This document shows, piece by piece, positions 41,326 to 60,860 of a stretch of 64,000 nt of DNA (position 1 is its first letter; each line of letters begins with the position of its first letter). The notes under the pieces are model-generated. The model did not search any database. It saw only the letters and a list, made by a program, of their open reading frames with translations, and had not been told where the DNA came from. A program made the position numbers and the translations under genes. The DNA lies in the sequence record MH791411.1, one strand, 5' to 3'.

Positions 41326-41392
41326 GCACCCTGTGGGCTAGTTTTTGTCTATGCGTATATAATAGCAAAGGGACTGACCTGAGTCAATCCCT
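41326..41392 (-). promoter_or_regulatory. Terminator/promoter/RCCC-hairpin module, copy 1 (others at 44078-44150, 47353-47420, 51358-51430)
   Basis: AAAGGGA-TTGAC-TCMG-GTCAG-TCCCTTT stem contains -35; TATTAT -10 17 bp downstream; then AGCCCACAGGGTGC. Confidence 0.85.
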
Positions 41393-41409
41393 TTTTTTAT
41401 TCTTTTTTG

Positions 41410-41610
41410 TTAGATGATTCTCCAATCATCAACGATCATGGTAAGATACCGAACCAGTGATTCGAGTGATTCGTGTTCTCGATAGTCTGACGCACCGCCA
41501 GCGGTACAAGTACAGCCGATTAAGCCGTTTTGCAATTCCTTAATCTGTACATCGATAAGGTTGGCTTTAGCTTCTTTCAGTACTTCAACCAGGGCGATAG
41601 CGATAGACAT
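41410..41610 (-). CDS. Early hypothetical protein
   Basis: Own promoter cassette, GGAG SD. Confidence 0.75.
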   Translation of the reverse strand: MSIAIALVEVLKEAKANLIDVQIKELQNGLIGCTCTAGGASDYREHESLESLVRYLTMIVDDWRII

Positions 41611-41700
41611 AATGTTTTACTCCAAACTATTGGCGGGAGAACTATTCCCCCGCTCTATGTAAAACATTATACATTACTGGTTAGTACTGTCAAATAGTTT

Positions 41701-41958
41701 TTATGAAATATCTTCGATGTAGTCGGCCCATTTCATTTTTTCAGTACTGTCAATGGCTACCGGATTATTTGGATCAAACCATTCACCATTACCGCAATAC
41801 ATACCAACGGCTACGGTTTTATAGCCATCCTGGGCCGTACACCACGACATTGCACGATAGATATGGCCTTTAACTGGTTGTAGTACTGGTAACGTTTTAT
41901 GGTCTTCTACGTAGGCCATCGCTTGATGATTTACCCGATATTGTGTGAACTGTTCCAT
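41701..41958 (-). CDS. Early hypothetical protein
   Basis: 85 aa, SD. Confidence 0.75.
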   Translation of the reverse strand: MEQFTQYRVNHQAMAYVEDHKTLPVLQPVKGHIYRAMSWCTAQDGYKTVAVGMYCGNGEWFDPNNPVAIDSTEKMKWADYIEDIS

Positions 41959-42034
41959 TATGTTTCCCCTTGTAGTTAGTAAAGTTATTACATCAGTACT
42001 ATCAAGCTATGTCAATAGTACTGAAATAAAACTT

Positions 42035-42259
42035 TTAGATTAGATTATTGAGGCCGTCAATGGTAGACTCACTTTCTTCTTTCTCCCATTGTCGGTAGTA
42101 CTTCCATGCTTCATGATAGGTGGCGATTAGTTCATCTTTTTGATCCTGGTTACATGCCAGTACTGAATCACGGTGAGCGGTGTTATAGATAGAATCGAAT
42201 GATTTCTTCTCTTCTGCCAGGTTAGCTACTTCCCGCATCAGTTCATCAAAGTTAGCCAT
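42035..42259 (-). CDS. Early hypothetical protein
   Basis: AGGAG SD, own promoter. Confidence 0.8.
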   Translation of the reverse strand: MANFDELMREVANLAEEKKSFDSIYNTAHRDSVLACNQDQKDELIATYHEAWKYYRQWEKEESESTIDGLNNLI

Positions 42260-42326
42260 TTTATTACTCCTTTTAGTGGGGGAGGATATCTCCCCCTATG
42301 CAAAACATTATACTTTGTTTTAGTTA

Positions 42327-42590
42327 TTATGCAAGTACTTTTTTCATATAAACATTAAATTCTACACCGCCGTAACCTTCCACGATGATATGTTTTGCGT
42401 TATCACGTTTGCACATAGTGAAACCATCGTTTACGTGTTTTGCATTTTCCAGGGCGACATCACCGATAGCGGCACATACGGCACTAATAACAGTATTCCG
42501 CAAAGTACTGGTATCATTGGCGGTCATAGTAGTTTGCAGTACTACGTTGTCGTATACGTGTGCATTGATAGTGATTTCGATAGTGTTCAT
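42327..42590 (-). CDS. Early hypothetical protein
   Basis: Start reassigned to MNTIEI. Confidence 0.75.
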   Translation of the reverse strand: MNTIEITINAHVYDNVVLQTTMTANDTSTLRNTVISAVCAAIGDVALENAKHVNDGFTMCKRDNAKHIIVEGYGGVEFNVYMKKVLA

Positions 42591-42677
42591 GGTGTATCTC
42601 CTGGACTTGAGGGGAAACCATTTCCCCCTCTCGATATAAAACATTATACGTTAATCTAACTACAATGCAAGTACTTT

Positions 42678-42869
42678 TTAAATTTTATTTCCGATATAGT
42701 CCGGCATGTTCTTTTCAGTCATACGCTTTGCTAATGTCTGCATATGGCTTATAGCGTTCAAGGTGTCTTCCTCCAGGGATGAATCGAGATAATCAGGATC
42801 ATTCTTCACCTTGCAATGATTATGATAGCGTAGTACTGCCAGTACTTTTTTAACTTCTTCTACTGTCAT
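42678..42869 (-). CDS. Early hypothetical protein
   Basis: 63 aa, coupled to upstream gene. Confidence 0.7.
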   Translation of the reverse strand: MTVEEVKKVLAVLRYHNHCKVKNDPDYLDSSLEEDTLNAISHMQTLAKRMTEKNMPDYIGNKI

Positions 42870-43138
42870 AATAAGTACCCCACTTCGTTAGCTTTCAGGT
42901 TAGTATCAATCATCAGTGGATTTTTGTAGTTCACAAAACGAGTAGTTTTCTCGATAGCGAATCCCATATAATCCAGCTTACTAACAGTACATTCATTCTT
43001 AAAAACTTCTTTCGCTGCATCGATGGCTGATTGCATGGATAACCGACCATCTAAATTAATGTTTCCAAATGATCCACCAGCAGAAGTAGGATTACCGTTC
43101 ATATCTTTAATGATCATAGTAGCGGAGTAGCTGGACAT
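42866..43138 (-). CDS. Early hypothetical protein
   Basis: LDGRLSMQSAID; contains a Chi site at 43074. Confidence 0.75.
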   Translation of the reverse strand: MSSYSATMIIKDMNGNPTSAGGSFGNINLDGRLSMQSAIDAAKEVFKNECTVSKLDYMGFAIEKTTRFVNYKNPLMIDTNLKANEVGYLL

Positions 43139-43227
43139 AATTTTGTTTCCTTTTATTGGTGTGGGGAGAACTATTCTCCCCTTGATGTAAACTATTATAC
43201 AGTACTAAAATACTTTGTCAAATACTT

Positions 43228-43635
43228 TTATTCGCCCATATAGATTAGATTATCATCGCCTACATAGGGATCGCAAACGTTGATTTCTTCACAGTACTTC
43301 GTGAATACATCGCCATAGTGACCTAAACCACGATCCCAAAAACCAGTTCCGTGACCTTCGCGGGTAAGGAACAGATCATGACCAGCTTGCTCATAACCGT
43401 AATCAATAAACATACCGCGAACTACTTCCAGATCATTACCGTGTTTCTCAATGAAGCGAGAACATGCAATCACCGCCGCTTGACGTGCTTCATCAGATAA
43501 CTCATAATCTTCCAGGTAATCGCCGTTATCATTATGTACAGTACTGAATTGCATAGCTTCAATGTAAGCTACAACCATTGCAGCATGATTTTTATCGTTA
43601 GTGATGTTCCGAGCGAGATTAGTAGTAGTAGACAT
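43228..43635 (-). CDS. Conserved-type phage protein (GHDxxLTRxGHGxGFWDR)
   Basis: AGHDLFLTREGHGTGFWDRG motif; function unknown to me. Confidence 0.8.
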   Translation of the reverse strand: MSTTTNLARNITNDKNHAAMVVAYIEAMQFSTVHNDNGDYLEDYELSDEARQAAVIACSRFIEKHGNDLEVVRGMFIDYGYEQAGHDLFLTREGHGTGFWDRGLGHYGDVFTKYCEEINVCDPYVGDDNLIYMGE

Positions 43636-43718
43636 GATTTTATTCCTTATTGTATTGGGGAGAACTATTCTCCCCTTGATGTAAACTATTATACAGTACT
43701 GATATACTTTGTCAATAC

Positions 43719-43940
43719 TTAATTACGTTTAAAATGATATGTGCCTTTATCATCCTGTACGCCCCATACTGATTTACCATCAACACCAGTGAAGCCGGAT
43801 TGTAATTCAATATGGAAACCATTATTATCAACTACAAAAACTTTTTTATTTTCATCCCGATAACATTGATATTCTGAATCAACATTAAAGGCCGCATCAT
43901 TCAGACGATTGGAAGCGTAAATGCAAGTCATTGTAGTCAT
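43719..43940 (-). CDS. Early hypothetical protein
   Basis: Start reassigned to MTTMTC. Confidence 0.7.
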   Translation of the reverse strand: MTTMTCIYASNRLNDAAFNVDSEYQCYRDENKKVFVVDNNGFHIELQSGFTGVDGKSVWGVQDDKGTYHFKRN

Positions 43941-44164
43941 GATTTTATTCCTTAATATACCAGGGAGAACCATTCCCCCTCTCGATATAAAACATTATAC
44001 TTGATTCTAAGTACAATGCAAGTACTTTTTTAAAAATAGTTTTCAGTACTGAATACTTATATAATAGATACACTTCCGCACCCTATGGGTCAGTGAGTTA
44101 TCTCTCAATGGATATATAATAGCAAAGGGACTGACCGGAGTCAATCCCTTTTTTTAATCTTTTT

Positions 44165-44749
44165 TTATCGTGTTACCTTACTTGCTGCCACATCACGCTT
44201 TTTATAGTACTGATTCCAGATATTGCTGGTTAAACCGTAATCAAGTACTTTAATAAGTCCATTACGATCCTGGCCGATATTCTGTTTTCTGATATCTCTT
44301 ATCGTTAGTGTTGATAATGTATCATCAACGTGTTGTAGTGCATCAGCAAAGCGGTGCTGGCGTTCGATTGCATTACGTTTAATATTGTACTTTAATTCAT
44401 TGCACGCGTTTACGTGCTTCACACTGCCTTTGCTTGCAGTACTCAACCGATCCATAACGATAAACATATTATCAGGATCGCATAAATGCATATGCACCTT
44501 TGCAAAGTACTGTTTCAATTGAGGGCGGTCATAGTCTAAAAAATTCCATACCTTACATTCAGTTTCATTTTGTTCTACACCCGCATCACAATTCGCGACC
44601 TTAATCACTAACCGATCATTTAAAGCGAAAACTATACGGGAAGAACCAGCACCGATGATCTCCAGGCCAGCTAACCGACAAGCTGAAAGGATCTCTTTGT
44701 TGGTTTCCATTTCTGACAGTGTACGGATGAATTTAGTATAATTACGCAT
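44165..44749 (-). CDS. Ser/Thr-type protein kinase-fold enzyme
   Basis: IGAGSSRIVF (Gly loop), VIKVA (Lys), EQNETE (alphaC Glu), RDIRKQN (catalytic loop), LDYG (DFG equivalent). Confidence 0.85.
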   Translation of the reverse strand: MRNYTKFIRTLSEMETNKEILSACRLAGLEIIGAGSSRIVFALNDRLVIKVANCDAGVEQNETECKVWNFLDYDRPQLKQYFAKVHMHLCDPDNMFIVMDRLSTASKGSVKHVNACNELKYNIKRNAIERQHRFADALQHVDDTLSTLTIRDIRKQNIGQDRNGLIKVLDYGLTSNIWNQYYKKRDVAASKVTR

Positions 44750-44780
44750 TGCATGTTCTCCTTGAGTTAATGAAACTATA

Positions 44781-45023
44781 TTACAGTACTTTACTATCAA
44801 TGGCAACTACTTTTTTAACATTAACGGCGTGGATCACTTCCTTCGTGTTTTTAGTACTGAATACTTTCGCCGCTCCTTGTTCGACCGTGATACGATAGCG
44901 ACCATTAACATCAACCATATTAATAAAGTCCGGCGTGCTGAATGGTGTTGTTTTACATTTGAGTACTGTTAACAGTTCCACCAGCGATGTAGTTTCTTTG
45001 ATACGTTTTTCTAAAGTAATCAT
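44781..45023 (-). CDS. Early hypothetical protein
   Basis: Start reassigned to MITLEK; Chi at 44978. Confidence 0.7.
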   Translation of the reverse strand: MITLEKRIKETTSLVELLTVLKCKTTPFSTPDFINMVDVNGRYRITVEQGAAKVFSTKNTKEVIHAVNVKKVVAIDSKVL

Positions 45024-45080
45024 TTTGTTTCCCCCGTGTTGGTATGTACATATAGTACTAAAACATTTGAGTACTGTCAA

Positions 45081-45299
45081 TTAGATAATATTATATTTCT
45101 TAAAATAAAATGCGTCCTGTGTTGGTTGATACTCGATACCGTTACCGTTATTGACTTCAACTAATAAACCTTTGTCAATTAGTTTTTTAATAGTACGATA
45201 CCCTTGTTGAAAATTGGTAAAATGTGAATCATTACGAAAGGTATAACCGTGCTTAACTGCTTCATCAATAGTTTTCTTTTCGATTTTAGATAATTTCAT
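45081..45299 (-). CDS. Possible winged-helix protein
   Basis: RTIKKLIDKGLLVEV..YQPT. Confidence 0.5.
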   Translation of the reverse strand: MKLSKIEKKTIDEAVKHGYTFRNDSHFTNFQQGYRTIKKLIDKGLLVEVNNGNGIEYQPTQDAFYFKKYNII

Positions 45300-45352
45300 T
45301 TTGTTTCTCCCGTGTTGGTATGTGTACATAGTACTAAAACAATTGAGTACTG

Positions 45353-45607
45353 TCAACGTGATATTAGTTTTATTTTCTTATTGTATTGTTGATGCTCATA
45401 AAGGTTTATCTTTCCTGTGTTCTCGATTACTATCCTGTTGTTAGTGTCCACGTCGATTACACGCAGTTTCCCGTTGCTTAACTTCCTAGGTAATAGGTTA
45501 CCATTAATAAACTCATTAGCAAGCTGTACGGCCTTTGTGATGATTCTCTGAGGTGCTTTATAGTGTACCCGTAAGATGTTATCTTTATATAGTTGAACCT
45601 TAATCAT
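45353..45607 (-). CDS. RelE/ParE-like toxin-fold protein
   Basis: KAVQLANEFINGNLLPRKL..VIDV..R..LYEHQQYNK pattern recalled from ParE-like families. Confidence 0.45.
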   Translation of the reverse strand: MIKVQLYKDNILRVHYKAPQRIITKAVQLANEFINGNLLPRKLSNGKLRVIDVDTNNRIVIENTGKINLYEHQQYNKKIKLISR

Positions 45608-45621
45608 TTTGTTTGTCCTAT

Positions 45622-45646
45622 AAAAAAGGCGGGAACTGATCCCGCC
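45622..45646 (-). terminator. Intrinsic terminator
   Basis: GGCGGGA-TCAGT-TCCCGCC-T6. Confidence 0.85.
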
Positions 45647-45668
45647 GTGTTGTTAGTACTGCAAGTTA

Positions 45669-46064
45669 TTAGATAACCTGGCGGCGTTTACTGTATACTG
45701 TTACACGATTACCCTTACGATCATGTCGGATCTCTTTCTGGTTGCGAATCAGTTCACTTGGACGCTTAAGGTTTGCCAGGTGATCCGCGTGAGTCCATGC
45801 GGTGTGGTTTACCTGTACTTTGATATCAGAATCAGCGATAAACTCATCTTGTGCGTCAAGTATTGCCGCCAGCATATCCGCTCGTTTTAGTTCTGCTGCT
45901 GTCAGTACTGGCTCAGGTGAATTCACAATATCAGAGATTTCTTTGAACTGTACGGCCCAGCGTTGACCTTTCGTTGCATCTTTGCCCATGTCTTTAAATG
46001 CTGCTCCTTCCTCGCGTGCAACAATACGGGCAGCTTCACGGGTAGCGTAGAATTTAGTAATCAT
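45669..46064 (-). CDS. Early protein, paralogue of 59079-59345
   Basis: FYATREAARIVAR..FKDMG..RWA..DRKGNRVTVY. Confidence 0.8.
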   Translation of the reverse strand: MITKFYATREAARIVAREEGAAFKDMGKDATKGQRWAVQFKEISDIVNSPEPVLTAAELKRADMLAAILDAQDEFIADSDIKVQVNHTAWTHADHLANLKRPSELIRNQKEIRHDRKGNRVTVYSKRRQVI

Positions 46065-46159
46065 GGTATACATCCTATTAGTTGAGTTAGTACTACAAGT
46101 TAGAGTCTATTATAAAGTACTATCTGGGCAATGTCAAATAGTACTTTAAATGGATTCTA

Positions 46160-46483
46160 TTACATGTCTTTCTTACGTTTTACATCGTGGTAGCGAACTG
46201 TTATTTCTTTGTTGATCTCTTCCTCGATGCGATGAATAACTTTTTCTTTCGGGTTGAAACCTATAACGGTTTCTTTAATGATCTCCAAGCCCGTGTATTC
46301 GCCTTGTGTACCGTAACCGTATGTAAAGGTTTCGTGTCCCAGGTCTTCCCAGCGGTCGCCAATTAACGCAGACACGTAGCAAGAGTGGTAAGTATTGCCG
46401 TGTGAATCAGTCCACCGATTAACGTTAATGTCAAAGGAGGTTACAATTTTCAATTCTACTTTCTGGGCAAGGATCATAGCCAT
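46160..46483 (-). CDS. Early protein, paralogue of 53003-53326
   Basis: RWTDSHGNTYHSC..FTYGY..VKRKKD. Confidence 0.8.
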   Translation of the reverse strand: MAMILAQKVELKIVTSFDINVNRWTDSHGNTYHSCYVSALIGDRWEDLGHETFTYGYGTQGEYTGLEIIKETVIGFNPKEKVIHRIEEEINKEITVRYHDVKRKKDM

Positions 46484-46844
46484 TTTTATTTCTCTCTCTT
46501 TGTTAGGAGGGGAACCATTCCCCTCGCTTGATGTAAACTATTATACAGTACTAAGATACTTTGTCAATACTTATTTTTTGGAAAGTTTACGCATTAATTC
46601 TACGCTTTCTTGTGAACGTTTTGCTACCTGGCAAGCTGTATGGGCAGTAAACATTTTTGTATAGTCTGACGCTTTGCCACCGAACCGAGCGGCACGTTCA
46701 CGGGCACTTGGAACTAATACTATTTCTTTATTACAGATAGTGCACTTAGCCATTTTTATTTCTCTCTCTTTGTTAGGAGGGGAACCGTTTCCCCTCACTT
46801 GATGTAAACTATTATACAGTACTAAGATACTTTGTCAATACTTA
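46477..46844. repeat. Two ~97-bp near-identical promoter cassettes flanking one gene
   Basis: 46477-46573 and 46747-46844. Confidence 0.9.
46571..46753 (-). CDS. Small Cys/His protein, possible Zn binding
   Basis: MAKCTICNK...HTAC. Confidence 0.75.
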   Translation of the reverse strand: MAKCTICNKEIVLVPSARERAARFGGKASDYTKMFTAHTACQVAKRSQESVELMRKLSKK

Positions 46845-47117
46845 AGTATTGTAAATGTCGTGAATAGTGATAAAGTTTTTACGACCGTAAACATGTAAAT
46901 CAGTATCAATGTAGTGCTTATCAAGTACATCCTCGACGCTTAAAGACGTGTCGTGAATATCTTCATAAAATTGTGGATCAACAATCGTGCTTAAGTCATC
47001 TGGCGTTAACTTATCGTTAAGGCATTGAACCGCCTGGATATCTGCTTCACGTTTCCATTGTTCCAGATTAGTAGTCAGTACTTGCTCGATTTCGTTAGCT
47101 GTAAGTAAAGTCCGCAT
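46842..47117 (-). CDS. Acidic early protein
   Basis: 91 aa, AAGGA SD. Confidence 0.75.
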   Translation of the reverse strand: MRTLLTANEIEQVLTTNLEQWKREADIQAVQCLNDKLTPDDLSTIVDPQFYEDIHDTSLSVEDVLDKHYIDTDLHVYGRKNFITIHDIYNT

Positions 47118-47185
47118 TTTAATGTTTCCTTATCAGTGGTTGATGTAAGTATTATACTCGTTTACTTTCTATTGTCAAACTATTT

Positions 47186-47262
47186 TATCAGGGGAGTTTT
47201 TCGTATGTCTTACTCCTGGACTACTTAACGGGGTTACTTATTTCGTTCCCCGTCCTGATGTA
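47186..47262 (-). ncRNA. Promoter-driven ORF-less structured RNA, copy 1
   Basis: -10 at 47267; outer ATCAGG/CCTGAT stem, ACGGGG/CCCCGT stem, GGAGT-14nt-ACTCC stem; no ATG. Confidence 0.6.
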
Positions 47263-47432
47263 AAACATTATACTTGATTCTAAGTACAATGCAAGTACTT
47301 TTTTAAAAATAGTTTTCAGTACTAGCCACCAGCAAACAATAGATACATTTATGCACCCTGTGGGCTAATTTGTTTCTATGCGTATATAATAGCAAAGGGA
47401 CTGACCGGAGTCAATCCCTTTTTCAAATATTT

Positions 47433-47582
47433 TTAAACTTCTTTCGGGTTGCGATATGTGATAGCGTTCGGGTACATTTGTTTAATGTTATTCCATGCCT
47501 GGTTAACATTATAACCACTTGATCGAATCAGTTGGTTATTACCGACACCTTGAAACACTACTTCAAATAAGAATTCTTTCAT
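47433..47582 (-). CDS. Small early protein (49 aa)
   Basis: Manual: MKEFLFEVVFQGVGNNQLIRSSG... Confidence 0.6.
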   Translation of the reverse strand: MKEFLFEVVFQGVGNNQLIRSSGYNVNQAWNNIKQMYPNAITYRNPKEV

Positions 47583-47752
47583 GCTTTCACCTCTCGATCT
47601 GCTTTGCCTTTACGCCAGGCCGTTGCTAATTGTTCGCGTTGCCATAAGTCGAGTGATACGTAAAGTTTTGCATTATCACCCTTCGGATATTCGCCAGTAG
47701 TACCAATCCGATAAAACAGATCTTTCAGTACTGTTAATTCTACCTGGACCAT
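47579..47752 (-). CDS. Small early protein
   Basis: Start reassigned to MVQVEL. Confidence 0.7.
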   Translation of the reverse strand: MVQVELTVLKDLFYRIGTTGEYPKGDNAKLYVSLDLWQREQLATAWRKGKADREVKA

Positions 47753-47839
47753 TATACTTTCCTCTTTGTTAGGAGGGGAACTATTCCCCTTCCGATATAA
47801 AACATTATACACTTTATTCAGTACTGTGCAAGTACTTTT

Positions 47840-48052: not shown

Positions 48053-48135
48053 TTTTCTTTCCTCTTAGTGGGGAGAATCATTTCTCCCCTTCATGTAAAC
48101 TATTATACAGTACTGGATTGCATTGTCAATAGTTT

Positions 48136-48753: not shown

Positions 48754-49110
48754 CTATGATAAAATCATGATAGGATATTCACTATCTATCAATACCTCGA
48801 ATCCGAAACCTTCGTACCATTCTTTAAGATTAAAGGCGTTATCTTCTCCCGTATCGCATTCTAAGATGATACAATCTGAATCATCGGCGGCATCAATAAA
48901 GGCATTCATTAATTCGTTACCTTCACCATTGCCCCGACTATCAGGATCAACATAAAGAGAATCAATAAACGCTACACGGTCATAATCAAGATCCGGTGCA
49001 ATGATTCCACGTTTAACAAACCAGTACTGCAATTGTGCTACTTTGCCCTGTACTTGATAGCCAGTGATCTCGCCATTGTCAGTAGTACGCGTGATATGTT
49101 GTATTCCCAT
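48754..49110 (-). CDS. GNAT-family acetyltransferase
   Basis: IDSLYVDPDSRGNGEGNELM (acetyl-CoA motif A), WYEGFGF. Confidence 0.85.
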   Translation of the reverse strand: MGIQHITRTTDNGEITGYQVQGKVAQLQYWFVKRGIIAPDLDYDRVAFIDSLYVDPDSRGNGEGNELMNAFIDAADDSDCIILECDTGEDNAFNLKEWYEGFGFEVLIDSEYPIMILS

Positions 49111-49173: not shown

Positions 49174-49431
49174 TTATCTCATAGATCTATGCCAACAATT
49201 ACGCGGATCTCTTTTAAAAGTACTATCATGATCCTCCTGGCAAGTAATACAATACATGCACCCTATAACGGCCTGGCGTCGATTCTCAGGGATTTTATCG
49301 CCGCAGTCGAGGCAATGTACAAGTGATTCTCTTTGTGCGTTAATTTGCTTTCTAGCGTGGTTAACGGCGGCCTGAATCACTGCATGAATCTCGTCTTGTT
49401 CGGCCCCGTCTTTCGCGTATCCTACTGCCAT
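49174..49431 (-). CDS. TraR/DksA-family C4 zinc-finger protein
   Basis: GYAKDGAEQDEI (acidic tip), CLDCGDKIPENRRQAVIGCMYCITCQ. Confidence 0.9.
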   Translation of the reverse strand: MAVGYAKDGAEQDEIHAVIQAAVNHARKQINAQRESLVHCLDCGDKIPENRRQAVIGCMYCITCQEDHDSTFKRDPRNCWHRSMR

Positions 49432-49760
49432 TATTTTAACCTCATTATAAAAATACTATAGTACTGTAATGCTACAATAATACTACTAGTGTTTATCTTA
49501 TTCAAACCATATGATACTACATATCCACCAGCATTACCACGAATAGTAACGCCTTTGTACTGTCTATATAAATTCAACTGCGTATATTGCCTTTGATCAA
49601 GAATTGATCAGAATTATACGCCTTATGCTAAATTGATCCAGTACTTTTTTGATCATTTATTGATCGATATTATATAGTTACATTTGTGCACCCTATGGGT
49701 TAGTGACGTTCTCGTCTTGATGTAAGTATTATGCCAGTACTGGAGGATATTGTCAATAGA

Positions 49761-51211: not shown

Positions 51212-51433
51212 GATTTGTTTCCTTATTACCAGGGGAAACCGTTTCCCCCTCTCGATGTAAAACATTATACGCTTATTGAGATAGTTTGCAAGTACTTTCT
51301 ACAAATACTTTTAAAATAGTTTTCAGTACTCAATACTCATATAATAGATACACTTATGCACCCTGTGGGCTAGTGAGCTATCTCTCAATGAATATATAAT
51401 AGCAAAATGGCTGACCGGAGTCAACCACTTTTT

Positions 51434-52323: not shown

Positions 52324-52328
52324 ATTAA

Positions 52329-54165: not shown

Positions 54166-54450
54166 TGTTTTGATTCCTTTGATTTGGAAGGAGAACCGTT
54201 TCCCCCTCTCGATGTAAAACATTATACGCTAATCTCTTAATCGTGCAAGTACTTTTTATTACTTTTTGCAAAATACTTTAAACGCTCTCAATCGCGTTCT
54301 TACAGCCTTAACGCCACCAGCTAGGGCAATGCATCAGATAATCAGTTTAATGCGTTAGAATCGTTTCTAGGCGGTGCTGGTGGCATGGTAAACGATAAAC
54401 ACAAAAAAGCCCACCGTTTAAGGTGGGCTAGTGATTCAGTACTTTAATTG

Positions 54451-54933
54451 TTATGCTTCAACTTTGCGATGAGATTCGATCCATTCCTCGCGAGTCATAC
54501 CGCTGGCGTTAATCGCGTCCAGTACTACCGCAATGCAGTTACCACGCACCGGAATCAGATATTCTTCCCCGTTGTCCAGTACTACCGCTACGCGTTCCTG
54601 AATCCATTTTTTGGCTTTTACTTCTGGCTTGTCTTCCCCATACTTAACCGCCAGGGCTTTTTGTGCCATCTCTGTAACTACTTCCAGATCCAATCCAACT
54701 ACTGCCGCCTGAATACTTTCGATTGTTGCTTGTAGTTCTGCTTCACGGGCCGCCTTTGCCGCTTCAATTTCTGCCGCTTTATTTGCTTGTAGTTCTTTCG
54801 CAGTACTGTACGCGATGTTAAAATTATTGCGTACCGCTTTCATGGTATCGTTATCCAGTTCAGCCAGGATCTCAGCCGCGACGTTAGTTTCATTTGCTAC
54901 CAGTGCTTTGATGAATGATTTTACATTAGCCAT
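54451..54933 (-). CDS. H-NS/StpA-like protein with altered DNA-binding motif
   Basis: Coiled-coil N-terminus; C-terminus KAK..DNGE.7.GNCIAVVLDAINASGMTREEWI aligns by eye to H-NS KAK..ENGE.7.[22 protein letters not shown]. Confidence 0.65.
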   Translation of the reverse strand: MANVKSFIKALVANETNVAAEILAELDNDTMKAVRNNFNIAYSTAKELQANKAAEIEAAKAAREAELQATIESIQAAVVGLDLEVVTEMAQKALAVKYGEDKPEVKAKKWIQERVAVVLDNGEEYLIPVRGNCIAVVLDAINASGMTREEWIESHRKVEA

Positions 54934-54997
54934 TTTATAAATCCTCAATTAAAGTTTAGTTTACGTTTATTAGTGTATCAAAGTTTTCTCGACGTGT

Positions 54998-55050
54998 CCA
55001 GTTTTTCGTTCGACTTACTGGCGGTCTACTTAGTGCTCCCCGTCTTGATG
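54998..55050 (-). ncRNA. Structured RNA motif, copy 3 (5' leader of H-NS-like gene)
   Basis: CCAGT-AAGTCGAACGAAAA-ACTGG; compensatory version of copies 1 and 2. Confidence 0.6.
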
Positions 55051-55166
55051 TAATACATTCTACGCTTTTCTGCGGTAATGTCAACTACTTTCTTAAAACT
55101 ATTTTCAAAGTATCTCAGTACTACGATACTACAAAAACAAAAAAGCCCACCAGGTGGGCTATGTAC

Positions 55167-55397
55167 TTAATCAGTGAGTAAAATATTAAACACTTTACCA
55201 TTTAACGTTATTGGTGCACTGCTACCAGGCACAAGATCCGTTAGTATACCTGCAATCGCTTTATCATTGGCTACCTTTCCAGTGTCCAACAGTACTACAG
55301 TACTGATAAGATTAACGCTCGTTTCAATATCATAATGCACGGCGTTAAGTAGTTGTGTAGTACTGCTTTCGTTAAGTAAAACAATTCGCTTAGTCAT
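55167..55397 (-). CDS. Early hypothetical protein
   Basis: 76 aa, followed by terminator at ~55137-55160. Confidence 0.65.
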   Translation of the reverse strand: MTKRIVLLNESSTTQLLNAVHYDIETSVNLISTVVLLDTGKVANDKAIAGILTDLVPGSSAPITLNGKVFNILLTD

Positions 55398-55418
55398 GAT
55401 GTTACCCCGTAGTATCTA

Positions 55419-55718
55419 TCAACGGCAATTAATAACGCCGGTATGAGTTACTTTCTCGGTATCCATTACAGTGACCGAACCGCGTTTAGCACTGGCATCA
55501 TAATAAATTGTCGTGCTACCGTTTTCGTCTTCTTCATGGAACGGGCCGTTTTTAAATGCTTCCGGCTGGATCTCTAAATCCTTTAATACAATCTCGCCAG
55601 TTCTTTCATCGGTCATTGCAACAGTGCACTGAATGAATTTTTCACTACTTACATCTAATGACGCATTAACAGCGAAAGAGGAAACAGATAAAGCCAGGGC
55701 GATGATTGCAATTTTCAT
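55419..55718 (-). CDS. Secreted/periplasmic protein
   Basis: Sec signal MKIAIIALALSVSSFAVNA. Confidence 0.75.
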   Translation of the reverse strand: MKIAIIALALSVSSFAVNASLDVSSEKFIQCTVAMTDERTGEIVLKDLEIQPEAFKNGPFHEEDENGSTTIYYDASAKRGSVTVMDTEKVTHTGVINCR

Positions 55719-55802
55719 TTGATTATCCTTAGTTACCAGGGGAAACCGTTTCCCCTTGCGATGTAAAATATTATACAGTACTAAAAACTAATTGCAAGTA
55801 CT

Positions 55803-56039
55803 TTATGATTTTTTATAAAACATTTCAGCAGTGATATTTTTACCCGTTGGCTGTACTTTATCCAGAATTTTTTGATGCCCTGGTCGTCCAAAGGAATATG
55901 ATCCGTAAACAGTAAACCAGTAGTTACCCTCAGTGTTTACATGTACAGCACAATAAGGAACACCACGCGATTCATCACTAGTAAAGTGTGATACCGTTCC
56001 CGTTACATTCGCAGACGTTGATTTGATTTGTTCGACCAT
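55803..56039 (-). CDS. Early hypothetical protein
   Basis: Own cassette. Confidence 0.75.
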   Translation of the reverse strand: MVEQIKSTSANVTGTVSHFTSDESRGVPYCAVHVNTEGNYWFTVYGSYSFGRPGHQKILDKVQPTGKNITAEMFYKKS

Positions 56040-56147
56040 TTTCTTATTCCTTAGTTACCAGGGGAACCGCTCCCCCTATGCAAAACATTATACGCGTTTA
56101 AAAACTAATTGCAAGTATTTTAATAAAAAGTATTTGAAAAATAGTTG

Positions 56148-56216
56148 TTGACAAGTGCATCCAGTACTGGCATAATTACTACATCAAGACGAAACAGTCA
56201 CTAACCCACCGGGTGC
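56148..56216 (+). promoter_or_regulatory. Antisense sigma70 promoter with RCCC-hairpin, no ORF
   Basis: TTGACA-17-CATAAT; AACCCACCGGGTGC at 56203. Confidence 0.75.
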
Positions 56217-56282
56217 CGAGATCCGTCTATTAAATGATTCAGTACTGAAAAAGTAACGGGGAGTTATTATCTCCCCGTGTTG

Positions 56283-56504
56283 TTATTTTGTAAGGTATAA
56301 ACAGAAGTCGCCTTTATTTGCTACGCCGCCAGTGTAACGCGAGGAATAGTTAGAAACGTCCTGGACTTCTGCTATTACCAGGGTATCATCATTCAATTCG
56401 TCGCAGAAGCAAACGGCTGGATCTTGTACGCCGATTTTGTCGGCATGTTCCCGCATAGATTTAACCAGTGCTTCCAGTTGGGAAAGAGTAGTGATATTAG
56501 CCAT
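56283..56504 (-). CDS. Early hypothetical protein
   Basis: Start reassigned to MANITT. Confidence 0.7.
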   Translation of the reverse strand: MANITTLSQLEALVKSMREHADKIGVQDPAVCFCDELNDDTLVIAEVQDVSNYSSRYTGGVANKGDFCLYLTK

Positions 56505-56588
56505 TTTATTTTCCTCATTACCAGGGAGAACCATTTCTCCCTTTGATGTAAACCATTATACAGTACTGAAAACTAATTGCAAGTACTT

Positions 56589-56777
56589 TTAATTAAATTC
56601 CATAAAATCATTTTCAACGTGCACAACAATCTGATTATTTTTAAAGGACGCAGAAAACTCTATACAATCATAAACCGCTTTTTCTGTTACCAGACTATGA
56701 GCACCAATCGGATTAATTGGGGATTGAATTGTTTCAATCTCGTTACCTTGTTCATTAACGATTAAAATATTAAACAT
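56589..56777 (-). CDS. Early hypothetical protein
   Basis: AGGAG SD. Confidence 0.7.
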   Translation of the reverse strand: MFNILIVNEQGNEIETIQSPINPIGAHSLVTEKAVYDCIEFSASFKNNQIVVHVENDFMEFN

Positions 56778-56816
56778 TGCCGTTACTCCTGGATAGTGTT
56801 AACTCGATATAAAGTA

Positions 56817-56999
56817 TTATACGCCTTTATTGCTTAGTGTCCAGTGATCACGCATCATACGCCCCGCACGATCCCAGCTAGTAGGCATGGGTATGCCTTG
56901 CAATTCGTTAGGGGAGATCTCGACCTCGATCCCTACATCAATAACAGTCATTCCAGCTTTCGCAGCTTGCTCGCGGATAACCTCAGATAATGTTGTCAT
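56817..56999 (-). CDS. Early hypothetical protein
   Basis: AGGAG SD. Confidence 0.7.
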   Translation of the reverse strand: MTTLSEVIREQAAKAGMTVIDVGIEVEISPNELQGIPMPTSWDRAGRMMRDHWTLSNKGV

Positions 57000-57073
57000 G
57001 ATTAAAGCTCCTGGATAGTGTTAACTCGATATAAAGTATTATACAGTACTGAAAACTAATTGCAAGTACTTTT

Positions 57074-57334
57074 TTAATATTGTTTGTCGTCGTCTTCCTC
57101 GATGAATTGACCGACGAAATGATCTACTTTCGCTTTGAGGCTTTTATAATCTTCTTCTACTTCCGTTAAACGTTCCTGGTAGTATTCCAATGCTTCAAGA
57201 TACGCCGCCTCAGCAGTTTTTGCACGCATAGCTAAATTCATTCCACGCGTTTCATCAAATAGCCAATAACCATCGGTGCACTGGCTAATAGATAATGACT
57301 TGCTTAGTACTGTATAGCTAATTACTTTACTCAT
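57074..57334 (-). CDS. Conserved-type phage early protein
   Basis: SQCTDGYWLFDETRGMNLAMRAKT. Confidence 0.8.
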   Translation of the reverse strand: MSKVISYTVLSKSLSISQCTDGYWLFDETRGMNLAMRAKTAEAAYLEALEYYQERLTEVEEDYKSLKAKVDHFVGQFIEEDDDKQY

Positions 57335-57391
57335 TAGATAACCCTCAGTAAAGGCGGGAACTATTACCCGCCATTATCTCAGTACTGAATA

Positions 57392-57631
57392 TTACATTCC
57401 AACCATTGCAGCACGGATCGCAGTAGTGCTATACTTAAAGCCGTCCGGCGTTGTAGTAGTACCGTTGGCTTTTAATCTGCGGTACATACATTCCGCAGCA
57501 ATATCTTTAGTTCTACTTTGTGCGATGCAACTTTGAGCAAGCCGATACAATGACTCACCGTTATTAATCCAAAGGCTTACATTCCAATGAGTTTTGTTTT
57601 TGTGTCCGTTGTAAGTTTTAGTACTAGCCAT
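57392..57631 (-). CDS. Early protein, paralogue of 59432-59671
   Basis: YNGHKNKTHWNVSLWINN...TPDGFKYSTTAIRAAMVGM. Confidence 0.8.
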   Translation of the reverse strand: MASTKTYNGHKNKTHWNVSLWINNGESLYRLAQSCIAQSRTKDIAAECMYRRLKANGTTTTPDGFKYSTTAIRAAMVGM

Positions 57632-57721
57632 TTTTAAATCCTCGTTTGAGCGGGGAACCACTCCCCGCCTCGATATAAAGTATTATACGCTTTTAAACTT
57701 AGTTTGCAAGTACTTTTTAAA

Positions 57722-58333
57722 TTAATATTCGATTGATTCCACTACGCCATCAATAACATTGAATTGATACTCGTTACCCTCAATCAGTGCCGTAATGTTT
57801 TCAGTAGTGAATTGATCCTCATATGCATTCTCTAAATCACGGTACAACTTGCGGGACAATTCACGAATAGTTTCAGTGAGTAGTTCCTCAAGCTCATTAA
57901 CTAACGTTTCTTGTTTTGCGGTTAAATCAGTGTAAGCCGATTCAATGTACCCGCTTACAGTATTCTCATGCGAGTAGTGGGAGTGCGAACGTTTTACACT
58001 CATCGCCAAATCATCTTCATTCAGCAAGTGACGGATTGAGCGATACTTAGTTAATGCTCTTACCTTGCGTAAAAACTTCACTGCGTCAACGTGGTCAGTA
58101 CTGATTGATGCACCGTCACCCTGGGACCAAAAACCACTGAATTGTATTTCAGCGTCATTAATGCCATATTCCGGTAGTACTGTTTCTTTATAGTATTCAA
58201 TTTCACTTTCAGAAAAATAATTGTCGTTTGAGTTTTTTTCACGTTCCCGAACCAGTTCGATAGCTGACGTTTGTTGTTCTGCGTTCAATTCAGAAAAAGC
58301 CATAACATAAGTAGTAGTAGTGATAGTTTTCAT
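57722..58333 (-). CDS. Protein of family often annotated as toxin-antitoxin antitoxin
   Basis: TYVMAFSELN..FSGFWSQGDGAS..LYRDLENAYE; family recalled, function unproven. Confidence 0.55.
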   Translation of the reverse strand: MKTITTTTYVMAFSELNAEQQTSAIELVREREKNSNDNYFSESEIEYYKETVLPEYGINDAEIQFSGFWSQGDGASISTDHVDAVKFLRKVRALTKYRSIRHLLNEDDLAMSVKRSHSHYSHENTVSGYIESAYTDLTAKQETLVNELEELLTETIRELSRKLYRDLENAYEDQFTTENITALIEGNEYQFNVIDGVVESIEY

Positions 58334-58400
58334 TTTGTAACCCTCATTCAGTAGTTGATGTAAGTATTATACGCTTTTAAAAACATTTGTCAAACTATTT

Positions 58401-58478
58401 TATCAGGGGAGTTTTTCGTGTGCCTTACTCCTGGGCTACTTAACGGGAAGTTACTTATTTCGTTCCCCGTCCTGATGT
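58401..58478 (-). ncRNA. Promoter-driven ORF-less structured RNA, copy 2
   Basis: Near-identical to 47186-47262; -10 at 58484. Confidence 0.6.
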
Positions 58479-58557
58479 AAAACATTATACGCCTTTAAAC
58501 ATAGTTTGCAAGTACTTTTTAAAAATAGTTTTCAGTACTGAATAGTAAAAAAAAGTA

Positions 58558-58730
58558 TTGACAGCATTATCAAGTACTGGTATAATATACCCCATGACAA
58601 CAGCTAACCCACCGGGTGCACAATTGTAACTATACTAAACTAATTTTTCTATAGATACACTCCCGCACCCTATGGGCTACGGCTTATCTGCCAATGAATA
58701 CATTATGCCAGTACTGACAAAATAAGTCAA
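58558..58730. promoter_or_regulatory. Convergent promoter pair, each followed by an RCCC-hairpin
   Basis: + TTGACA-17-TATAAT (58558/58581), motif 58606; - TTGACT-17-CATAAT (58725/58702), motif 58665. Confidence 0.8.
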
Positions 58731-58760
58731 TACCGGCAATTGTAAAGATTTGTAAACTGC

Positions 58761-58991
58761 TTATACTGCAATCGCGTCCAGGCTATAATAATAATAAGTG
58801 CCGTATTGGTGTACTTTATTACCTTTTATTTCAGTACTGAATGAATCCGAACGGTTTGCATATGATGTTAATTTAAAGTACTTTGATTTGCTGATACGTT
58901 GCCATACACCACAGATCCGCTGTAAGTAAGTAGTTTTATTCGTGGTAGTATCTTTTACGGTTTTAACTTCAGTCATATACATATTAGTCAT
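58761..58991 (-). CDS. Early hypothetical protein
   Basis: Own cassette. Confidence 0.7.
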   Translation of the reverse strand: MTNMYMTEVKTVKDTTTNKTTYLQRICGVWQRISKSKYFKLTSYANRSDSFSTEIKGNKVHQYGTYYYYSLDAIAV

Positions 58992-59078
58992 TTTCATTAC
59001 TCCAGGTTATAGGCGGGAAGAGTTCCCGCTCTCGATGTAAAACATTATACGCCATTAAACATAGTTTGCAAGTACTTT

Positions 59079-59345
59079 TTATTCAAGTACTGCAATCTTT
59101 TTAGTACGGTACACGGTCACGCGGTTGCCCTTTCGGTCGAGCTTTATTTCTACCACTCGACGCGATACACTATCGGGACTTTTTAAGGCCGCTAACCAGT
59201 ACTGTAATGATCTGGCGGTACTACGCTTTACAATGGCCCAACGTTTACCACGTTCCGATTGTACGCCCATATCTTTAAACGTTGCCCCGTCCTGGCGTGC
59301 GGCGATCCGAGCTTGTTCACGCGTCGCAAAATACTTAATTTTCAT
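59079..59345 (-). CDS. Early protein, paralogue of 45669-46064
   Basis: YFATREQARIAAR. Confidence 0.8.
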   Translation of the reverse strand: MKIKYFATREQARIAARQDGATFKDMGVQSERGKRWAIVKRSTARSLQYWLAALKSPDSVSRRVVEIKLDRKGNRVTVYRTKKIAVLE

Positions 59346-59431
59346 GCTGTTGCCCTTATCGTTGGTGTATGAATAAAACACTATTATAAAGTACTATCGC
59401 AAAAAAATGATAGTACTTTAAATAAATTCTA

Positions 59432-59671
59432 TTACATTCCAACCATCGCCGCACGGATCGCAGTAGTGCTATATTTGAATCCGTCCGGTGTTTTATCTTG
59501 TCCAGTCTGTTCTAAAAATAACATCATATGACGGGCCGCATCATTGCGATTAGTGCTATCGTTAATAAAGTCCTGGGCCAACCGATACAATCCCTCATCG
59601 TTATTAATCCAAAGGCTTACATTCCAATGAGTTTTGTTTTTGTGACCTAAGAACATTTTTGATTTAGCCAT
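59432..59671 (-). CDS. Early protein, paralogue of 57392-57631
   Basis: GHKNKTHWNVSLWINNDE. Confidence 0.8.
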   Translation of the reverse strand: MAKSKMFLGHKNKTHWNVSLWINNDEGLYRLAQDFINDSTNRNDAARHMMLFLEQTGQDKTPDGFKYSTTAIRAAMVGM

Positions 59672-59764
59672 TTTTTTAATCCTCTTATATAGTGGGGAAC
59701 TATTCCCCACCTGATGTAAAACATTATACGCCATTAAACATAGTTTGCAAGTACTTTATTAAAC

Positions 59765-60127
59765 TTATTTGTAAATTTTGCCACTGTCAGCCCATACCAG
59801 GAAACGAGGCATATTATCCCATGCATCTTGTTTTAAGTTTAAGCCGTGCAATTCCTCAGTTGTTGCCATCCCTGGTACTGGCTTACTACACACCGCGAAA
59901 TTTTCGCCCATATACTGATAAACCATCGTCAAATCATTTGAGATCATTATATGGATCATTGAATCCAGCATCAAAGTAGCGGCGTATTGTTCACGCTTAA
60001 GCGGCAACATTGCAATAAGTTCCCGATAAGCTGCAATGTGAATTTTTACAGTTTCAGCCGGAAGACCTTTCATCTCATCGCGGAAGTTTACCAGGTTAAG
60101 CATGATTTTATTGATTTGAGTCGCCAT
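59765..60127 (-). CDS. First early protein of region
   Basis: Start reassigned to MATQIN. Confidence 0.75.
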   Translation of the reverse strand: MATQINKIMLNLVNFRDEMKGLPAETVKIHIAAYRELIAMLPLKREQYAATLMLDSMIHIMISNDLTMVYQYMGENFAVCSKPVPGMATTEELHGLNLKQDAWDNMPRFLVWADSGKIYK

Positions 60128-60241
60128 CGTTTTAATCTCTCTTAATGTGTAGCGGGAAGTGTTCCCGCTCTCGATGTAAAACATTATACGCTTTTATCAG
60201 TACGGTGCAAGTACTTTCTACAAATACTTTTAAAATAGTTT

Positions 60242-60328
60242 TCTTTCTATATAGGAGTACTATTATTCAGTACTGCAATCATCCAGGGGAACTATCTTTC
60301 TATATAGGAGTACTATTATTCAGTACTG
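60242..60328. repeat. 34-bp direct repeat, each copy with two AGTACT
   Basis: tctttctatataggagtactattattcagtactg at 60242 and 60295. Confidence 0.9.
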
Positions 60329-60490
60329 AATCAATCCACTAAATCATCCCTATACCCCGTAAAACGTCCTCAGACGCATTCTAACGCATTAATACACATA
60401 AGCTATACATTTGCACCATTCCAATCATTCCAGGGCTTTACAGGCCGTTTAAACGCGTTAAATTATTTTCAATTATTTTGTTTTTAGGTA

Positions 60491-60860
60491 TTGACTTGAT
60501 CCTGAAAAAGCGTATAATTACTACATAGACGCGAGAAAGCGGATACCCCAGGGGGTGGGAAGATCCGTCCAAAATTCAAGATATAAAAAAAGGATACACT
60601 CCCGCACCCTAGCAGGTAAACGCACTTTCTCAGTACTGAAATATAGTACCATAGTCCGGCCCAGGATAGCAAGCAAATTAATTAAAACTTTTTTGCTTCC
60701 AGGGTATTGCTTTATTTTTCCAGTACTGTATAATAGTTCCATCAAGTCGAGAAAGACTCAAGCCCACCGGGTGCATAGTTACGCCCAAAATTCAGTACTG
60801 AAAAAATTTTTAAAAATATCCGGCCAGGCCGTTGACATTGCCCCCAGTTTATAAGATAAT
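60491..60860 (+). promoter_or_regulatory. Three tandem rightward sigma70 promoters with no downstream ORF
   Basis: TTGACT-16-TATAAT (60491), TTGCTT-16-TATAAT (60707), TTGACA-17-GATAAT (60832). Confidence 0.8.

Follow-up and report, generated by a model that had tools for sequence, protein, structure and literature searches.

A previously undescribed promoter-proximal hairpin module in the terminal repeat of RaK2-like jumbo phages

Results

The stretch of DNA analysed here comprises 64,000 nucleotides of sequence record MH791411.1 and is called the window in the following. It is 99% identical to Escherichia phage Ecwhy_1, 98% identical to fEgEco12 and 90-97% identical to PBECO4, the 121Q-type phages, G17, phAPEC6 and other members of the genus Asteriusvirus, which are RaK2-like jumbo myoviruses of approximately 350 kb. 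The subject of this study is a unit of about 55 nt, occurring eleven times in the window, whose core is a 13-nt motif that can form a small RNA hairpin directly behind a promoter. The direct terminal repeat (DTR) of fEgEco12 has a length of 20,993 bp, as determined by PhageTerm and confirmed by restriction digest (PMC13070987). Alignment of the first 22.5 kb of fEgEco12 sets the limits of the DTR in the window to 39930-61864 (about 22 kb, no strand), with genome position 1 at 61864 and the inner end of the repeat at approximately 39930, and a step in G+C content from 0.31-0.34 to 0.36-0.41 agrees with this boundary. On the basis of the alignment and the G+C step, the interval 41326-60774, in which the motif had been noticed in a preliminary description made from the letters alone, is essentially the terminal repeat, and all eleven units are located within it. 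That description had recognised the 13-nt core, but it had missed both the ~55-nt unit around it and the location in the terminal repeat. The strand of the window is opposite to that of fEgEco12, so that the DTR genes lie on the minus strand and run inward from the physical end. No tRNA or tmRNA was found in the window.

The motif RCCCAYMGGGTGC has nine exact matches in the 64 kb, compared to 0.00 expected, and was not found in any of 100 shuffles. Pattern search places six of these copies on the minus strand (41326, 44078, 47353, 49688, 51358 and 58665) and three on the plus strand (56204, 58607 and 60762). The repetition noticed before is therefore real and the minus-strand positions were correct, whereas the plus-strand coordinates had been 1 nt too low and the motif as written has 13 and not 14 nt. 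A covariance model built on the whole family returned 11 matches in the 64 kb, namely the nine exact and two diverged copies, with none in the first 41 kb and nothing beyond these 11. Allowing two mismatches in the motif pattern added only extras at chance level. Ten copies had been claimed, among them a variant near 60603 that proved genuine (ACCTGCTAGGGTGC, 60604-60617, minus strand); the one overlooked is CCCCAGGGGGTGG (60546-60558, plus strand), which faces this variant. All nine canonical copies start 20-27 nt past the -10 hexamer of a good sigma70 promoter, where 19-26 nt had been given, and always in the transcribed orientation, as had been observed. The statement that the copies never lie in an open reading frame (ORF) holds for annotated genes, since no copy overlaps an annotated gene of fEgEco12 or G17, but some copies are overlapped by mechanical ORFs, which are unannotated. 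Five copies (41326, 44078, 51358, 58665 and the 60604 variant), and not six as had been stated, continue with AGTGTATC; the copy at 47353 has AATGTATC.

The anatomy of the unit was derived from 85 distinct units of the window and of related phages. In the order of transcription, it consists of the start, a helix P1, a YUA linker, a helix P2 and a tail. A conserved CAT is located 6 nt past the -10 box and, judged from this spacing, we infer that transcription starts at its A, 7 nt after the -10 box. P1 is a helix of 3-5 bp with a purine-rich loop of 4-9 nt, whose sequence varies among the copies while the pairing is kept. At least 14 different stem sequences occur (GAC/GUC, AGUC/GACU, UGGC/GCCG, UGAG/CUCA, GACG/CGUC, GGAG/CUCC, AGCA/UGCU, GCC/GGC, ACCAC/GUGGU, ACAAA/UUUGU, AGACA/UGUCU, ACCG/CGGU, GCCAG/UUGGC and GCCA/UGGC). 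The mean best-hairpin score of P1 is 8.71, compared to 6.26 +/- 0.23 in 500 shuffles, and its covariation is 0.233 versus 0.116 +/- 0.007, a value that none of the 500 shuffles reaches and that collapses with slid partners. In the model-based alignment, all three scored P1 pairs vary on both sides. A short-leader minority (CAUAGACAAAAACUA type) has a P1 of 3 bp at most.

P2 is the near-invariant 4-bp hairpin RCCC-AYM-GGGU with the stem CCC/GGG. Of the 85 units, 43 close this stem with G.U, 40 with A-U and none with G-C, which bears out the earlier notice that the first stem position alternates between A and G against an invariant U. At the loop-proximal position nearly all units have a C-G pair, unit 10 has U.G, and two independent relatives have U-A (CBB, locus L013:4074, and Yen9-04, locus L007:4522), and one of these two double changes is scored by the covariation model alignment. 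Loops of 3 nt occur in seven kinds (ACA, AUA, ACC, AUC, AUU, ACU and ACG) and loops of 4 nt in five (UAGA, UCAA, UUUA, GUAA and UAUA). The tail GC-RGARN-USYRUCUAU is kept as sequence, then the conservation fades to AT-rich DNA, in which AGTACTG is frequent 25-35 nt beyond the tail. No coupling between the tail and upstream columns was detected by mutual information. Inspection by eye had suggested that the tail might form a third helix or a pseudoknot with the 5' end or with the loop of P1 (AUAGA/UCUAU or AGAUA/UAUCU), but this was rejected because of inconsistent registers and the lack of mutual information. Part of the tail can pair differently: an alternative 7-bp helix GGGUGCR/USYRUCU is paired to 89.5% in register compared to at most 58% when slid, and a two-state hairpin (P2 versus GGGUGC:tail) is a possibility. 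However, the variation within the alternative helix consists exclusively of transitions opposite G or U and half of the units lack a stable version of it, and because of these transitions we treat the two-state idea as unproven.

Eight of the 11 units in the window have a promoter with a 17-bp spacer and a TG-extended -10 box. No ribosome-binding site (RBS) or ORF follows the element in any of the 11; the element is followed instead by AT-rich DNA, a further promoter, a terminator or a unit that faces it. The modules are placed, in either orientation, between one gene and the promoter that belongs to the next, and four of the 11 are oriented against the genes. Counted over 87 distinct units, three settings can be distinguished. 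In the terminator-fused one (units 1, 2, 3 and 5; about 34 of the 87), the -35 box is located within a terminator-like hairpin (AAAGGGAUUGACUCCGGUCAGUCCCUUU) that closes the upstream gene, the outer stem of this hairpin covaries between phages around TTGAC, and the promoter of the next gene lies 57-80 nt downstream of the unit. All four window members are on the minus strand. Unit 1 (41302-41394) has the terminator-like hairpin at 41394-41367 with the -35 box TTGACT (41387-41382) inside, the -10 box TATTAT at 41364-41359, the element at 41359-41302 and the motif at 41338-41326. Unit 2 (44054-44151) consists of a terminator hairpin with the -35 box (44151-44124), a -10 box TATTAT, the P1 stem UGAG/CUCA, the motif (44090-44078) and the tail GGAAGTGTATCTAT. 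Unit 3 (47329-47421) has the terminator hairpin with the -35 box at 47421-47394 and the motif at 47365-47353, and a Chi site (GCTGGTGG, 47333-47326, minus strand) starts at the final bases of its element. In unit 5 (51334-51431), the terminator hairpin with the -35 box (51431-51404) is followed by the P1 stem UGAG/CUCA and the motif (51370-51358).

In the second setting (units 7/8 and 9/10; about 28 of the 87), units stand face to face with their motif starts 58-76 nt apart, and each RNA, if transcription continued through the facing unit, would fold into a long hairpin with imperfect pairing (-29 to -43 kcal/mol). Pair A is made up of unit 7 on the left (58558-58643, plus strand; promoter TTGACA-17-TATAAT at 58558-58586, motif at 58607-58619) and unit 8 on the right (58641-58730, minus strand; promoter at 58730-58702, P1 stem UGGC/GCCG, motif at 58677-58665), with motif starts 58 nt apart. 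The left member of pair B is unit 9 (60491-60582, plus strand) with the promoter TTGACT-16-TATAAT at 60491-60518, the P1 stem CGC/GCG and the variant motif CCCCAGGGGGTGG at 60546-60558, which scores 22.2 bits (E 0.002) with the covariance model. Its counterpart, unit 10 (60580-60672, minus strand), has a weaker promoter (TTGCTA at 60672-60667, 18 nt, TACTAT at 60648-60643), the variant motif ACCTGCTAGGGTGC at 60617-60604 with the U.G pair and a 4-nt loop, and the tail GGGAGTGTATCC; it scores 12.5 bits (E 2.1) and was accepted for its full architecture.

The third setting, with a good bidirectional terminator about 70 nt from the start of the unit, is represented by unit 6 and by 8-12 of the 87, and its predicted product is an ORF-less RNA of about 100 nt with a 3' hairpin and a U-tail. 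Unit 6 resembles a gene for a small RNA (sRNA) (56148-56290, plus strand) and is antisense to the flanking genes. It has its promoter at 56148-56176, the putative start A at 56183, the P1 stem GAC/GUC, the motif at 56204-56216 and a bidirectional intrinsic terminator at 56256-56278 with a U-rich tail, so that the predicted RNA would have about 105 nt and no ORF. Of the two other units, unit 4 (49664-49756, minus strand) has the promoter TTGACA-17-CATAAT (49756-49728) with CCAGTACTGG in the spacer, the P1 stem GACG/CGUC and the motif at 49700-49688. Unit 11 (60707-60798, plus strand; promoter TTGCTT-16-TATAAT at 60707-60734, P1 stem AGUC/GACU, motif at 60762-60774) is directed to the physical genome end, which is about 1.1 kb off.

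The distribution of the element was determined with several scans. An exact-pattern scan of 2.9 million viral contigs yielded 30 stretches, the great majority of which belong to RaK2, GAP32, CBB, 121Q and Yen9-04, to jumbo contigs resembling these or to short pieces of phages of this kind. In the stretches of the RaK2 type every match has the full architecture of promoter, P1, P2 and tail, whereas eight or nine of the 30 stretches are chance hits in unrelated contigs without a promoter. A motif search in relatives had been proposed, and by these scans the element is conserved in phages of the RaK2, GAP32, CBB, 121Q and Yen9-04 type. In each phage, metagenomic relatives included, the units are confined to one stretch of about 20 kb, and in CBB this stretch is the annotated terminal repeat, present at both ends of the contig. 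No unit was found in the 39-kb repeat of PA5oct, a distant relative infecting Pseudomonas, and a tail-pattern scan for distant phage relatives gave about 110 chance hits and one new true unit. A stricter pattern applied to one genome per species of 185,579 bacterial and archaeal species (GTDB) resulted in 16 scattered single hits, none of them in Enterobacterales, and a host origin or host counterpart was rejected on the basis of these scattered hits. Over the 38-64 kb region, the covariance models of Rfam 15 gave at E<=1 no match to the element and only a chance-level S15-leader hit away from it, and the element is not mentioned in the papers on CBB, RaK2, phAPEC6, fEgEco12, Sharanji and PA5oct. 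The view that the element had not been described is thus upheld by Rfam and by the searchable literature, and we regard it as a previously undescribed conserved RNA module of RaK2-like jumbo phages.

The genes between the units have promoters of their own. About 35 other near-consensus promoters are present in the DTR, roughly one per small gene, with TTGACA or TTGCAA, a 16-nt spacer and TATAAT. Behind each of these gene promoters comes a GC-rich 5' stem-loop of another kind, which covaries freely (GGGGAGAA...UUCUCCCC type), and then an RBS and the ORF, so that a gene cassette has the order AT-rich UP region, promoter, start at ACAU, stem-loop GGGGAGAA-n3/4-UUCUCCCC, RBS and small ORFan. Examples on the minus strand are located at 43715-43640, 46567-46490, 50855-50780 and 51894-51815 (families D1-D6, D9 and D10). 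Together with the terminator-fused promoters, these cassettes are the jumbo-phage counterpart of the PeSL (promoter-early stem-loop) cassettes of T4-type phages. A second repeated non-coding stretch, family D13, lies at 47133-47232 and 58348-58447, with a similar leader at 55057-54960. It has a gene-type promoter (about 47291-47264, by inspection, and 58511-58484), followed by approximately 100 nt of structured RNA (ACAUCAGGACGGGGAAC...CUCCCCUGAUAAAAUAG) without an ORF, which leads straight to another consensus promoter (47178 and 58393). D13 may be a second small-RNA or leader family.

The search for a protein partner among the products of the repeat covered 30 of the larger DTR proteins with Pfam and ten, including the most conserved, with PHROGs. 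The only recognised domains are a ParE-like domain, GNAT, a DksA/TraR zinc finger, DUF7247 and DUF7249. The gene for the ParE-like toxin domain (PF24732, E 6e-11) is conserved in six relatives. A DksA/TraR-type C4 zinc-finger protein (PF01258, E 4e-9) and an adjoining GNAT acetyltransferase are encoded at 49174-49431 and 48754-49110, respectively (minus strand); proteins of the DksA/TraR type bind to the secondary channel of RNA polymerase. The most widely conserved DTR protein (57722-58333, minus strand; 203 aa, phrog_5162, present in eight relatives) has an invariant SGFxSQGDGAS motif and is encoded by the first gene after convergent pair A. Its AlphaFold model is a confident one with a pLDDT of 87, and no match was found in the PDB by sequence or by fold. 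The substitution profile of the close Asteriusvirus orthologues shows a divergence too small to reveal constraint.

Several other sequence features of the terminal repeat deserve mention. Chi occurs 11 times in the 22-kb DTR, where 0.09 would be expected per strand, and the remaining 42 kb have a single copy. Nine sites are on the minus strand (41272, 43074, 44978, 47326, 48575, 49525, 50035, 54314 and 61268) and two on the plus strand (54376 and 61280). Nine copies face RecBCD arriving via the right genome end (at about 39930), which is the orientation for a stop, and one lies 584 bp inside the left genome end (61864). The relatives are likewise enriched in Chi, which is often found there within the spacer of the element promoters. 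This enrichment looks like an end protection of the linear genome. About 0.8 kb inside the physical genome end, an array of about 10 repeats with an 8-bp period (TAGCCGTT/TAGCCGTC/CAGCCATC-like) spans 60962-61113, and the DNA after it, up to 61960, contains two Chi sites in inverted arrangement and many copies of CAGTACTG; the region is a candidate for a terminus or for a role in packaging.

The commonest hexamer of the window is AGTACT with 275 copies (approximately 13-fold the expectation overall and 20-fold in the DTR; examples at 49734-49743, 56161-56170 and 44042-44053), the second-ranking palindrome has 83 copies, and CAGTACTG occurs 67 times. AGTACT takes fixed spots in promoters, as AGTAC-TTGCAA at the -35 box, as AGTACTG abutting TATAAT and as AGTACTGG-CATAAT in element promoters, and it is also found 25-35 nt past many elements and within coding DNA. 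An enrichment to 4-8 copies per kb is common to the RaK2, GAP32, CBB and Yen9-04 loci, compared to 0.1 per kb in PA5oct, which suggests a group-specific DNA-binding factor or marking system. GATC is scarce in the window (149 versus about 202 expected), and five copies, three of them as TGATCA, are clustered within 70 bp (49595-49665) around a promoter, just downstream of unit 4, which may be a Dam/SeqA-sensitive site. In several relatives, a near-perfect Fur-box-like palindrome is located at the centre of convergent pairs (L002 8085-8110, L030 ~6095-6115, L004 ~1283-1300 and L024); it reads either GAGAATGATAATCATTTAC, which agrees in 16 of 19 positions with the Fur-box consensus, or GCGAAATGATAATCATTCGC. 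A LexA-box-like CTGT-N8-ACAG follows the element in L007, L008, L002, L027 and L030 (for example TACTGTACATAAAAACAGTA). Neither of these two sequences adjoins a unit of this window.

Discussion

The sequence comparisons support the view that the element acts as an RNA of the sense strand, as the preliminary description had proposed. This reading is favoured because the adjacent helix P1 covaries, because the closing pair of P2 alternates between G.U and A-U, because two double changes from C-G to U-A preserve the pairing, and because the orientation is fixed relative to the promoter. Because of its G.U pairs, the structure is specific to the strand that is transcribed.

Our preferred reading, which we put forward tentatively, is that the units may belong to non-coding RNAs of a multi-copy, immediate-early family and form their 5' domain, which would act as a recognition module at the RNA level. 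An RNA product with a recognition hairpin is the best explanation because of the autonomy of the units, their copy number, their location in the DNA that enters first and the sRNA-like subset. Host sigma70 RNA polymerase would start at the A of the conserved CAT, the first 12-22 nt of the RNA would fold into the variable clamp helix P1 and, after the YUA linker, RCCC-AYM-GGGU would form P2. GC-RGARN-USYRUCUAU would be retained as sequence or, alternatively, pair with GGGUGC. A single conserved partner, which could be a protein of the phage or a factor shared across Enterobacterales, would then recognise P2 and its 3' flank. With 11 copies per repeat and 22 per packaged genome, the RNA would be present at a high dose in the first minutes and would sequester or recruit this partner.

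The units share several features with the early sRNAs and decoy RNAs of phages, of which RNA anti-CRISPRs are an example: a strong promoter of their own, no ORF, a location in the first-entering DNA and, in a subset, a Rho-independent terminator about 100 nt further on. The presence of many copies suggests that the dose is important. The typical layout of an sRNA gene, with a promoter, no ORF and a Rho-independent terminator within about 50-300 nt, is found in unit 6 and in 8-12 of the 87 units, whereas the others have no recognisable 3' end. PA5oct produces two abundant non-coding RNAs from its terminal repeat (PMC7318152), which may serve as a precedent for expression without homology. The units differ from known phage sRNAs in that they have no similarity in sequence or model to PA5oct or Rfam families and in that most copies lack a defined 3' end. 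The option of a small non-coding or decoy RNA, which had been considered before, fits the contexts better than antitermination, but the decoy role stays an inference. A more specific version of the idea seems rather doubtful to us: a new kind of immediate-early RNA weapon or tool, brought in with the first-entering DNA in approximately 22 copies per genome, which would be either a decoy against a conserved enterobacterial factor, serving host takeover or anti-defence, or a protein-independent polymerase modifier unrelated to put, with the pairs and the two-state hairpin as parts of its mechanism. Three particular targets were rejected by inspection. A CsrA sponge does not fit, as most of the purine pentamers lack GGA; MazF (ACA) decoys do not fit either, since AUA and other loops are common. 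A mimic of CRISPR repeats is unlikely for one invariant motif across hosts of different CRISPR types, and the motif is not known to resemble an enterobacterial CRISPR repeat.

Several observations weigh against the recognition-module interpretation. The literature searched contained no transcriptome of an Asteriusvirus or of any RaK2-like phage. With about -3.7 to -4.1 kcal/mol, P2 is weak, and the alternative helix is predicted to be more stable in 44 of the 85 units. That 13 + 16 nt are nearly invariant would be compatible with a DNA recognition site, too. A defined 3' end is lacking in most units, namely in the pairs and in those fused to a terminator. With Pfam and PHROGs no partner was recognised, the DTR proteins being nearly all ORFans. 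Finally, the ParE-like gene (45353-45607, minus strand) has no promoter of its own; it lies 20 nt behind a strong intrinsic terminator (GGCGGGAUCAGUUCCCGCC + U6, 45607-45646, minus strand) and can be expressed only by read-through.

This gene also speaks for an action in cis, in which the element would modify RNA polymerase co-transcriptionally, either as a processive antiterminator of the nut/put type or as a hairpin-stabilised promoter-proximal pause for factor loading. The fixed position just past the start, the two adjacent small hairpins and an invariance across hosts that would suit contact with the conserved polymerase agree with such a role. Like lambda nut and HK022 put, the units are promoter-proximal small hairpins of the nascent RNA in a phage early region, and their GCCC...GGGC-like stem recalls boxB. 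HK022 put consists of two stem-loops (about 70 nt) and works in cis without a phage protein; the unit, with two small hairpins within about 35-55 nt, is likened to it by layout only. However, boxA, lambda-type boxB and ops are all absent: no exact lambda boxA (CGCTCTTA) and no boxB-like 15-mer within two mismatches exist in the window, the six matches to the rrn-type boxA (TGCTCTTTAACAA) with up to two mismatches are all far from the units, and ops (GGCGGTAGnnTG) has no window match within one mismatch. The stem of the unit has 4 bp and a variable loop of 3-4 nt, whereas boxB has a 5-bp stem and a purine-rich, GNRA-like pentaloop. There are 11 copies instead of two, and many of them aim away from genes, at terminators or at each other, with the pairs head-on, four of the 11 units directed against genes and 8-12 of the 87 meeting an efficient terminator after about 70 nt. 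A nut site precedes a terminator and promoterless genes; here the ParE-like gene is placed in this way, whereas nearly all genes have promoters of their own, and about 35 gene promoters in 22 kb would make read-through unnecessary. The unit is not a member of the nut class, as two defining features are absent, and the analogy to nut and put drawn in the preliminary description is not supported by the contexts. Regarding a pause, the small hairpin followed by GG...(9 nt)...UG and the position in an untranslated leader resemble his-type pauses and ops, respectively. The elemental pause has the consensus G-10 Y-1 G+1, and relative to tail position 66 the units have GGG at -12 to -10, U at -1 (79 of 85) and G at +1 (50 of 85). 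However, the hairpin ends 8 nt from this candidate pause, compared to approximately 11 nt for pause hairpins of the his type, and no long operon follows. The hairpin-stabilised pause, whose consensus fits but whose spacing is too short, is kept as a rival of low probability. Altogether, we consider a modification of the polymerase in cis unlikely.

A function without a specific partner is a minor possibility. The module might be a 5' stabiliser or processing determinant of the RNA end within a mobile, PeSL-like cassette, with the copies homogenised by recombination. P1 starts 2-5 nt from the presumed 5' end, as in 5' stabilisers, and the DTR is a hyperplastic ORFan region rich in repeated promoter cassettes. 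The PeSLs of T4-type phages are composite sigma70 promoter/terminator cassettes that mediate shuffling; they are repeated, about 100 bp long, concentrated in hyperplastic regions of small ORFans as well, and consist of a near-consensus sigma70 early promoter with an AT-rich upstream part and a stem-loop that terminates upstream transcription (PMC2839356, PMC4122927). The units have the repeated near-consensus promoter and AT-rich upstream DNA in an ORFan-rich region, and the terminating stem-loop at or over the promoter is found in four of the 11 window units, with stems covarying around TTGAC, and in about 34 of the 87 in the family. They lack the Shine-Dalgarno sequence and start codon at the 3' end, and in contrast to PeSLs, which have no conserved transcribed RNA domain, they possess an invariant hairpin and tail with sequence conservation across genera, contain no ORF and also occur inverted and face to face. 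A stabiliser needs structure and not an invariant 13-mer with a conserved 16-nt tail, and the gene cassettes of the DTR already use a freely covarying GC stem-loop for stabilising. Recombination cannot explain the identity of the cores across genera while the flanks differ; the RaK2-like genera share only about a third of their proteins according to the CBB paper. Less probable still is a site in duplex DNA at +15 to +45, either an operator or roadblock by which a phage or host protein would shut off or tune the promoters, or a loading site of the Q type beside a -10-like element (TCTATNNT). ACCC-N3-GGGT is palindromic, a block of about 30 bp is conserved, the tail often reads TATAAT, TATTAT or TATAGT, and a second palindrome, AGTACT, recurs in promoter spacers and about 25-35 nt downstream. 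However, half of the copies break the symmetry, position 1 being G and position 11 being T, and the symmetric G/C never occurs. Furthermore, the two double changes retain pairing, the loop varies in length (3 or 4 nt) and sequence, the neighbouring P1 is conserved as structure only, and the orientation to the promoter is constant in 85 units. Finally, we regard it as very improbable that the units give origin-type transcripts, in which promoter, G-cluster RNA and AT-rich DNA would form R-loops that prime replication or recombination of the DTR, comparable to T4 oriF/oriG and ColE1. An AT-rich region does follow every unit, the units are located in a terminal repeat that is also packed with Chi, and the convergent RNA pairs resemble the RNA I/RNA II layouts of plasmids, but eleven origins in 22 kb are implausible, DnaA boxes and iterons are not present beside the units, and several units terminate at terminators.

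The jumbo phages of the RaK2/121Q type are being characterised as candidates for therapy, yet more than 80% of their genes are unknown, as is all of their regulatory RNA. That a structured module of invariant sequence is repeated about 11 times in the terminal repeat and retained in phages of Escherichia, Klebsiella, Cronobacter, Pectobacterium and Yersinia points to strong selection, and it is probably active in the first minutes of infection. For genome annotation, the units represent a new family of non-coding transcription units, which current pipelines leave as empty intergenic space. Whatever binds to the module would be a conserved player in the takeover of the host, and the element might serve as a handle for finding this binder.

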